NCBI RefSeq assembly: GCF_001194135.2
Contig: NC_069002.1
Coordinates: 5,915,200 to 5,948,671 of the forward strand
Length of the DNA: 33,472 nucleotides
Direction of reading: 5' to 3'
Source of the DNA: Octopus bimaculoides
Lineage: Eukaryota
How positions within the stretch are numbered: the stretch's first letter is position 1; each line of letters opens with the position of its first letter. This document shows, piece after piece, positions 7,301 to 10,300 of the stretch. The notes beneath the pieces are model-generated. The model had not been told where the DNA came from, searched no databases, and saw only the letters and a program-made list of their open reading frames with translations. Both the position numbers and the translations under genes were made by a program.

Positions 7301-10300
7301 AGATCCATTAGATCTGGATTGACCTTCGGTGAAGCAACAAATAATATAAATCAAATATAAATCAAATATTTTTTTAAGGTGATCACATTTGGTTACCTAC
7401 ATGAAAGAATATAATAAAGTTTTGGATTCCCAGATGAACCTCAAAAGTTGCTTCTTTAAACTTTGGTCTTTTTGGTAGACATGAACAATTGTTCAAGAAT
7501 ATGGAGTTGATTGTAAGAGTCAGTTTCTGAAGATTGTTTTTGAATTACCGAAAGAATTTGTATCACTAAAACAGCCAGCCTGTAAAATATGACTACATAA
7601 CTCTTCCCTCCACAATTTGGCCCTTTGGATTTTTGCCCTCCTGGATCATTGATTAAAAAAAATACACATATATGTGTGTGCATGTGTGTGTGCATTATAT
7701 ATGAACACATATAATGATGGTGATGATGATGTACACACACACACACTAGTTCAATAAATCAGCAATTTGTAACGGTTTAATATCAATAATAACTGTTTTT
7801 TTAAGGGTCATAATCAAGATTTAAAAAAAGTCAGAATCCATGGCATAATAATAAAAACAACACACAATAAACAAAACAAAAATAGCCCACAAATTCATGT
7901 ATTATATACTCACTTAAATTCATATATATACATATACATATATATATATAGATATATATATACACACACACATATATATACGTATATATATATGTATGTA
8001 AGTATGAATATATAGATATATGTATGAGTGTATGTGTATATATGTATATATATATATATATATATATATGTATATGTATATGTATATGTTCTGCGTTCTT
8101 GTCCCATTTTGTATTATATATATATATATATAAATATACATACACATATATATAAATATAAAGGAAAGAAGGAGAGAGAGAGAAGGAAAGGGGTGAGAGA
8201 GAGGGAAGGAGAGAGAGAGAGAAAAGGAAAGGGGTGAGAGAGAGAGAGAGAGAGAGACATGTATATGTGTAATATCCACATAAACAACAACAAAAATGAA
8301 ACGAAATAACCACATCTGCCTACTACGCTGCATAGACTGACTGCACAGACAGAACGGAAGAAAATAAAAAACAGTGAGGACAGATATAAAGCTGTATGCT
8401 GTGTCACCCCTCGGTAGTTGTTAAGTTAGACCGTCGCCTTGGATGCAGATGCACAACACTGTGCAGTGCATCCAAGAAAATCTCCCTCTAACTGACCTGA
8501 GCAGAGGAGAACGCTGGTTGACTGGACAGCTGGTTTGACAGCTGAGCAATAGGCTGGATCTGGAAGCCTCGACTAGCCAAATTATCCTGAAGATAAAACG
8601 TTGTGAGAACTAAGCAAATGTGATTTAAAAAGAAGAAAAAAAAAACGAAAAAAAAAAGAGAAACTAAATGGAAACAAACTTAATCATGATTTAGACACAT
8701 GAGATTTACAATAAGAGAATAAGTCTTATTTAAATCTTAGGCTGTCTTGCCTAAGGTGCCATGCAATGGGATTGAACCTGAAATCATATAGTTGGAAAGC
8801 AAACTTGTTAATCGCAGAGCTGTGCCCATACATCTAAGTTTATGCTGATGTATACAGGTACATGTCAATGGGCACACACACACATACGCATGCACAGGTA
8901 TCCAGGATATAAACAAACATACATACATTTGATCAATAAACCTTGCTTTATACAAGGGGGTGCTGAAAAGTTCCTGGCTTTATGGGTATCACGAAAGGCC
9001 TGGTTAGAGGCCCAACCTTCCAAGTTCTTTTACAGGGCTTAGAAATGCTGCGATAAGTGCGTGAATCTGAGAGGGGAATATATTGGATAAAATCATAATT
9101 AACTGATCCTCTTGTATTTTGTTTTTTTACTCAAAGCCAGGAACTTTTCAGCACTCCCTCATAATTTACTGGCAAAACGTGAATATTGGAACCAAGATAT
9201 GAAGTAACATAGTTATATCATAGATTAACAATATATATATATATATATATATATATATATATCAATAGTTGGGTAAATATCAGTTGTTTCCTCTTCAAGC
9301 ATATCTGCTTATTTCATTATTACTATCCAATATGTCGTCTCAGTTGCTGCTGTATGTTAGTCAAAAAACATATTAAAATTGAGAATTACGGAAATATTTG
9401 GCAGAGTTATCGTACAACACAACAAAAAATGTGGAAATTTTTTTGGACTATTTATTCTCCTTTATAATAGGAAGTATGAAGATTTACACATTAGATAGAC
9501 ATGTAAGAAATTTCCTATTAGAAAATCTTCAGACAAAGAAAAATTATAATTATACATATGTATATATATATATATATATAATGGACTCTCTTGTTGTTGG
9601 ACAACACATGAGAGTTCTGAAATTCCTAGCTGAACAACCACACTGATGATTTGTTTATTGTGATCAAATCTTTGTGTTCACATAAGCTCATTTCCTCCAT
9701 CAAATCAGCATTACCTGTGCAGGTACACAATGCACCGCATGCCAGATGACGAAATGATTGCAGTGCAGTGTGAAATGAAGTGTTTTGCTCAAGAACACCA
9801 CACAATGCCAGGTCTGGGTACTGAAACCATGATCTCGCAATCAATATTGAGTGCACCATCTCAACCACTGAGCCATATAGTTATATGCATATATATTTAT
9901 ACTGCAACCTTAAAAAAATCTTTCCAGAAAAAGAACCTGAAAGTTCCAAGAAATATAACAAGAAGAAATATAAATGAAGAATTCATCAAATGGTAAGTTA
10001 TGAATTTCACAGAAATATATTAGCATTTTTGTATAAAAGGATGATTCCATCTCACAAGAATTTAAAAAAGATGGAAACTGGACAATGGATATTTTAAGTT
10101 GCAGTGAATAATTTTTGTATAGTGGTTCTGGTGGTGGTGAGGAGCGAGATATTTTAAAATGGACCAGTTGTATAAAGGTCTGAGTATGCAGCTAAGCCGG
10201 TAAGTTATTAAAACAATTGAAATTGGTTCTTCAAATGGATATTCGTATTGAATTTTTTTTTAGTTTTATCAATGAGATGAAAAAGCTTTACCAAAGATTC

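Follow-up and report, generated by a model that had tools for sequence, protein, structure and literature searches.

A probable evolutionarily maintained cassette exon in the variable MUN-domain loop of unc-13/Munc13 in Octopus bimaculoides

Munc13 acts as the master factor that primes vesicles for neurotransmitter release, and differences between its isoforms shape short-term plasticity. Here we compare the described isoform systems of this family with an optional stretch of 90 nucleotides (nt) in the unc-13/Munc13 gene of Octopus bimaculoides. The stretch, referred to as the cassette, encodes 30 amino acids of the variable loop of the MUN domain and is very probably a true alternative cassette exon that evolution has maintained. 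All coordinates are those of the analysed window, a stretch of 33,472 nt of Octopus bimaculoides DNA in which both the cassette and the other unc-13 exons lie on the minus strand (Table 1).

The most similar described case is found in rat Munc13-1. According to a passage of PMC5344669 which cites Brose et al. 1995, residues 1408-1452 form a poorly conserved and alternatively spliced loop; for this part of the rat protein, that passage confirms what the original prediction, a reading of the letters of the window, had stated of vertebrate Munc13-1. In the crystal constructs of rat Munc13-1 the dipeptide EF stands in for residues 1408-1452, and the rat cDNA used in the same study is the delta1415-1437 variant (Xu et al. 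2017, PMC5344669). The octopus cassette belongs to the same protein family and to the same loop, which connects the VLPP helix to the LTPKQC helix at the C-terminal end of MUN; like the rat segment it is optional, in frame and of similar size (30 amino acids, compared with 23 in rat). The rat loop is poorly conserved and lies outside the crystallised core. The difference concerns the position: the octopus cassette adjoins the exon starting with DISKE, about 20 residues C-terminal of 1415-1437, and is not inside that segment.

Two further systems are known in the family. A microexon between the calmodulin (CaM)-binding and C1 domains (9 nt encoding ‘VLK’ in C. elegans, 6 nt in mouse and human) is cell-type-specific, and its regulators in C. 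elegans are EXC-7/ELAV, MBL-1 and PRP-40 (PMC12287369). Its usage is near-binary between cell populations and it modulates function without abolishing it. The octopus cassette shares with it the gene family, the optional and frame-preserving character and the near-binary usage; unlike the microexon, it is 90 nt long, lies in the MUN loop and is known from sequence and RNA contigs only. It also fails the size limit of microexons, which is 27 nt or less, or up to 51 nt in broad definitions. The second system consists of the N-terminal isoforms generated by alternative promoters in Aplysia, Drosophila, C. elegans and mammals (PMC9282427). The cassette is likewise another route from one invertebrate unc13 gene to several synaptic isoforms; however, alternative starts swap whole N-terminal domains (C2A, CaM site), whereas the octopus exon is internal and alters a loop inside the conserved C-terminal core. 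No paper describing the cassette exon was found in the literature.

The exon and its use in RNA

The cassette is located in the long intron between the exon ending in GVQMIQ (11013) and the exon starting with DISKEIEK (3279). An intron of 7.7 kb had been predicted here, holding a stop-free island of 90 nt in phase 0-0 with an acceptor and the donor CAG/GTCAGT (slashes mark splice boundaries); all of these are present where the prediction had put them. On the minus strand, the acceptor side of the cassette reads ...acgttttatcttcag/GATAATTTGGCT, with the exon opening GATAAT, and the donor side reads TCCTCTGCTCAG/gtcagttag, with the exon closing GCTCAG. The upstream exon ends at 11013 with ...GGTGTCCAGATGATCCAG/gtaaac (in a longer read, AAAGGTGTCCAGATGATCCAG/gtaaac, encoding GVQMIQ) and the downstream exon starts at 3279 with ccccag/GATATTTCC (in a longer read, ccccag/GATATTTCCAAAGAGATAGAA); both are in phase 0 at the cassette junctions. 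Translation of the cassette gives 30 codons without a stop, and the peptide is rich in Q, S, A and P (six Q, six S and two P among the 30 residues).

Within the window the sequence is unique, in agreement with the original prediction, and it is not repeat-derived. The list of open reading frames (ORFs), which is bacterial in style, misses the cassette at its default length, again as predicted; when ORFs of at least 20 amino acids are listed, a 30-residue TTG ORF appears at 8488..8580 in the same frame. An open AG...GT interval in phase 0/0 carries little weight by itself: the intron contains 152 of them with a length of 45-180 nt, compared with about 104 in mononucleotide shuffles. The cassette is the only one of the 152 that combines at least 70% pyrimidines at positions -20 to -4 with at least 7 of 8 donor matches. 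A stricter cut-off (pyrimidines at least 0.8, donor at least 6/8) yielded a mean of 0.07 candidates in shuffled introns, and the cassette itself falls below that cut-off. It is the single best splice candidate of the intron, yet unprovable from sequence alone.

The RNA evidence consists of Logan contigs, from which minor variants are dropped, so that a form described below as the sole one of a run is the predominant and not the exclusive form. Runs under four organism labels contain the 90-nt cassette sequence. The loop exon, the cassette and the DISKE exon are found together in one contig in X1 (912 nt), X8 (3,922 nt) and X5 (988 nt). The upstream junction, 11013>8586, is present in the contigs of X1, X8, X5 and X11, in which positions 11012-11114 are followed by 8496-8585; the offset of one base in the contig pieces at the cassette corresponds to a G/G ambiguity at the junction. 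The contig of X11 (155 nt), which belongs to a third organism label, contains this upstream junction only. Past position 3279, the contigs of X1, X8 and X5 read CTGAGCAGAGGAGAACGCTGGTTGACTGGACAG, the reverse complement of the 3' end of the cassette (junction 8497>3279). The same downstream junction is also found in X30, X31 and X34 (organism A, other studies) and in X6, X14 and X15 (organism B). Altogether, inclusion was assembled in at least nine runs under two organism labels, and there it is the sole form assembled.

The skip junction, 11013>3279, is the sole form assembled in X25 (1,533 nt), X26 (1,728 nt) and X27 (3,859 nt). Beyond 3279 these contigs read CTGGATCATCTGGACACCTTTTGGCATTTGGCTT (...CTGGATCATCTGGACACC), which is the end of the GVQMIQ exon. 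X25 and X26 come from the same study as X1, and X27 from the same study as X8. Including the two runs with both forms, the skip junction is present in X25, X26, X27 and X35 of organism A and in X7 of organism B. Concerning the spacing between DISKE and VLPP, it is 98 nt in the skip contigs (102 minus 4 shared letters) and 189 nt in the inclusion contig of X31 (102 + 90 minus 3); therefore, the isoforms differ by exactly the 90-nt exon. In X35 the shared contig, with a depth of 32.2, stops three bases beyond the end of the exon and splits into a skip branch of depth 16.6 and an inclusion branch of depth 17.4, a ratio of about 1:1. X7 contains the skip branch as well as cassette words. No third splice variant was seen in the contigs examined.

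The spliceosome product is either ...GVQMIQ-[30 amino acids]-DISKE... or, if the intron is spliced out in one piece, ...GVQMIQ-DISKE.... The use of the cassette depends on the sample and ranges from nearly all-in to nearly all-out; since the frame is preserved, both mRNAs encode full-length protein. The proposal that the exon is optional, and that the flanking exons join directly as MIQ/DISKE in its absence, is thereby borne out by inclusion and skip junctions in RNA contigs, including both forms within X35 and within X7. Carry-over of genomic DNA was considered as a source of the contigs and rejected, because the contigs are spliced.

Two side observations concern the RNA contigs. In the DISKE exon, the organism-B contigs differ from the window (plus strand) by A>G at 3184 and 3223, T>C at 3214 and, in X15 only, C>T at 3169. 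The change at 3214 is found in X5, X6 and X7 and not in X15. On the transcript it reads A>G, a synonymous change (CTA to CTG, Leu) that either a polymorphism or adenosine-to-inosine editing could explain. Also, the segments 9217-9306, 9512-9612, 9714-9814, 10320-10420 and 11128-11300 have RNA-contig word depths of hundreds to tens of thousands with many spurious joints, which fits simple or dispersed repeats common to many transcripts rather than expression of the intron.

Table 1. Features of the cassette region of unc-13/Munc13 in the window.
Feature	Positions	Strand	Length	Description and evidence
Alternative cassette exon	8586..8497	minus	90 nt, 30 amino acids	Phase 0/0; sequence, RNA contigs, L001 orthologue
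Cassette 3' splice site, ttttatcttcAG	8587..8598	minus		AG at 8588-8587; used exactly in X1, X8, X5 and X11 contigs
Cassette 5' splice site, CAG/GTCAGT	8491..8496	minus		GT at 8496-8495; cassette end joined straight to 3279 in contigs
Upstream loop exon (...GVQMIQ)	11114..11013	minus	102 nt, 34 amino acids	Sequence and contig pieces 11012-11114
Downstream constitutive exon (DISKEIEK...LTPKQC...TETQQ)	3279..3054	minus	226 nt	C-terminal MUN helices; contig pieces 3054-3282/3283; PDB match E=1e-29
VLPP exon	11937..11866	minus	24 amino acids	VLPP motif, N-terminal edge of variable loop
Intron holding cassette	3280..11012	minus	7,733 nt	Wholly removed in skip isoform
Distal U-rich tract	8626..8663	minus	~38 nt	39-77 nt upstream of acceptor; candidate regulatory or branch-region element
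Hairpin, GGAUGCACUGCACA...UGUGCAUCUGCAUCC	8437-8477	minus		20-60 nt downstream of donor; -24.3 kcal/mol, z=-2.2

Conservation and the alternatives

A contig of 229 kb in the European Nucleotide Archive (ENA), referred to as L001, contains a DISKE exon with 74 of 75 residues identical to that of the window but only 84.4% identity at the nucleotide level, and it is therefore assigned to a different species. An orthologue of the cassette is located at L001:1203-1292; it is again 90 nt long, keeps the frame and is bounded by the acceptor ttttatctacAG and the donor GTTAGT. Its peptide is identical at 29 of 30 positions (N18S), with 91.1% nucleotide identity; seven of the eight nucleotide differences are synonymous and one is non-synonymous. 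In the 10 kb upstream of the L001 DISKE exon, the cassette is the sole non-microsatellite block that aligns to the window intron, and alignability is lost within about 10-20 nt on either side of it. As length, frame and splice sites are kept, the changes are biased towards synonymous ones and the surrounding intron is unalignable, the comparison indicates that the cassette peptide is under purifying selection, as is typical of a translated exon. The outcome that would have spoken against the original prediction, skip junctions only and no conservation, was found in neither respect: inclusion is assembled, and splice sites, frame and peptide are kept in L001. Downstream of the L001 DISKE exon, the intron contains a retroelement-like set of ORFs (zf-CCHC, RVT_1, rve) at L001:11293-15005, with no aligned counterpart in the window.

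The conservation may also be viewed at the RNA level. The exon would then be real and alternative, but its peptide a neutral spacer in a disordered loop, conserved mainly through splicing enhancers or RNA structure; we regard this as unlikely. Synonymous changes between the window and L001 affect 7 of 30 codons in the cassette and 32 of 75 in the DISKE exon, and the cassette has the higher nucleotide identity of the two, as an RNA-level constraint would have it; however, the difference in synonymous changes is not significant (Fisher p=0.076). The cassette is also letter-identical in the contigs of organisms A, B and C, whose flanking exons differ at 2-4 sites, and the mammalian loop has been removed from recombinant crystallography fragments (PMC5344669). 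Against the neutral spacer, the one non-synonymous change of the eight is conservative (N to S), as protein-level constraint predicts, and constraints at the RNA and the protein level can coexist. The strong conservation of the amino acids points to a dedicated function, for example as a site of binding or phosphorylation, rather than to a pure spacer.

Splicing noise or a recent exonisation, in which a long intron yields a pseudo-exon with no maintained function, is far less probable still. The length of the intron with its 152 open AG...GT intervals and the low inclusion depths in some runs speak for it; however, inclusion is the sole assembled form in the nine or more runs described above, with a partial contig under a third organism label, and L001, with only 84% identity in the neighbouring exon, still has the exon with its frame and both splice sites, the changes being synonymous-biased and the intron around it unalignable. 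The cassette is also unique rather than repeat-derived. That the exon is constitutive, merely missed by the ORF list, with the skip form an assembly artefact, is hardly credible: many runs have inclusion only, but the skip contigs are long (1.5-3.9 kb), of normal depth and present in five runs of four studies under two organism labels, and the two branch depths in X35 sum to about that of the shared contig, as those of two real isoforms would. A chance ORF and a repeat-derived pseudo-exon were likewise rejected. The preferred reading is that of a maintained alternative exon.

Concerning the distribution outside these genomes, the exons of a more distant relative, L002, are arranged in the same way, with 23 of 24 residues identical in the VLPP exon, 59% identity in the loop exon and 84% in the exon that starts D-M-S-K-E. 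Its intron at this place is 3.5 kb long and contains, by similarity, no cassette homologue or convincing candidate. In many insects the two flanking exons are fused, while in some an intron separates them as in the window. A word-indexed protein search with the cassette peptide gave no match, in a library that seems to consist largely of unspliced ORF calls; another word-indexed search returned single-exon ORF fragments only, mostly from insects. An exhaustive HMMER search of 1.84 billion representatives gave three weak matches to unrelated low-complexity or coiled-coil sequences, in a library that appears to be without spliced animal isoforms. These protein-library nulls are weak evidence and are silent on the annotation status of the exon. 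A lineage-specific origin of the cassette, as in the cephalopod-specific neuronal isoform that the original prediction had put forward, is merely consistent with the data; as to tissue, the contigs reveal differences from sample to sample only. Upstream of the VLPP exon of L002, positions 1777-2548 contain tandem units of about 46 nt, translating as ...HLAPTQCD*xDL.../ILPPLN, which produce repeated weak tblastn matches; this array is probably a minisatellite.

Position in the MUN loop and possible function

The joined exons match the Pfam family MUN (PF06292) with 128.8 bits (cut-off 24.2; E=4e-37) over profile positions 377-473 of 473, and the Munc13-1 MUN structures 3swh, 5uf7, 5ue8, 7t7c and 4y21 in the PDB are matched with E from 1e-29 to 1e-26; these matches identify the host gene as unc-13/Munc13. 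On the N-terminal side of the loop, the PDB construct sequence stops at ...LPP-EF. On the C-terminal side, the DISKE exon begins at the residue that pairs with the D of SKLKD, 1457 in rat, and the cassette inserts at rat 1456/1457, four residues past the boundary of the 1408-1452 deletion. This point is the C-terminal base of the loop, and the predicted placement in the variable MUN loop is essentially right. Because its position differs from that of the rat variable segment by about 20 residues, the cassette probably lies in a different intron. This distance makes homology of the octopus cassette and the rat optional exon doubtful, and an independent origin of the two plausible.

The 34-residue loop exon upstream of the intron is itself symmetric (phase 0/0) and poorly conserved, as seen in its identity to L002. 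It is kept in both isoforms in every contig examined, and it is joined to the VLPP exon in an inclusion run and in a skip run. An additional exon near 32.6 kb encodes a stretch of 33 residues. Because the exons located from about 32.6 kb down to 3.05 kb are all on the minus strand, the unc-13 gene appears to span most of the window. The window also contains runs of N at 909-1065, 14846-14939, 24622-25454 and 27977-28015 (157, 94, 833 and 39 nt, respectively), which are assembly gaps; long ‘ORFs’ at 24501-25634 were rejected as artefacts of translating the 833-nt gap.

The isoforms described above reflect an exon-definition choice between two frame-preserving mRNAs. We propose that this choice is not random but set by the tissue or cell type, for which the near-binary, cell-type-specific microexon of unc-13 in C. 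elegans (PMC12287369) is a precedent. Measured from VLPP to DISKE, the loop is about 40 residues long when the cassette is skipped and about 70 when it is included (the rat loop has about 49, or 26 in the short form), and the insert would lengthen a surface loop at the C2C-proximal, i.e. vesicle-proximal, end of the MUN rod. The added segment would be Q/S/P-rich, flexible and probably disordered. It could tune Munc13 by providing an interaction site, through phosphorylation, or by affecting solubility or clustering, with the core priming machinery left untouched.

Candidate regulatory elements are located on both sides of the exon (Table 1). The U-rich tract at 8626..8663, in which a poly-T/A array takes up 8627-8663, has no conserved counterpart in L001. 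Downstream of the L001 donor, positions 1300-1375 also form a stable fold (z=-3.0), with a sequence unrelated to that of the window hairpin. As the tract and the hairpin are not conserved in L001, a splicing role for them is speculative. The Rfam search gave only sub-threshold microRNA-like matches (mir-297, mir-3149 and others) on an (AT)n microsatellite and none on the exon; these were rejected as artefacts, all of them being far below the gathering scores and on the microsatellite. The microsatellites of the intron, (AC)n, (AT)n and (GA)n, are found at 6326-6453, 7922-8087, 8115-8257, 9231-9262 and 9551-9580.

Several points weigh against the proposal of a maintained, regulated and functional exon. 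The Logan contigs report predominant forms, and the term ‘regulated’ has its sole basis in near-binary differences between samples of the same studies. The three raw-read runs of organism A (X44-46) have zero depth on both exons; the gene is not expressed in them. When the window and L001 were scanned for Rbfox, Nova, MBNL, ELAV and PTB motifs, no conserved site emerged. At the protein level, the function of the insert is one that we infer, and the AlphaFold2 model of a 163-residue fragment, with a mean predicted local distance difference test (pLDDT) score of 40.8, is uninformative on order or disorder. Also, the insert may matter little, because the mammalian loop can be deleted from recombinant crystallography fragments and its removal generally raises their solubility (PMC5344669).

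Meaning for the Munc13 family

Taken by itself, the event is alternative splicing of an unremarkable sort, here affecting a key synaptic gene. The cassette may already be present in automated gene models, as the supporting RNA-sequencing data have been public since 2015. To our knowledge, structural work on Munc13 has always removed the loop in which it lies. A conserved, switch-like optional segment within an otherwise invariant C-terminal core gives a handle on the function of this loop, and the site allows one to test whether the same loop was diversified independently in two lineages. Tentatively, and with more doubt than belief, we suggest that the C-terminal loop of MUN might be a hot-spot for regulated optional exons, with separate origins in vertebrates and in the octopus lineage, and that the insert might tune priming or short-term plasticity in particular neuron classes. 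If true, the core release machinery would have diversified its isoforms convergently in two groups with large, complex nervous systems.

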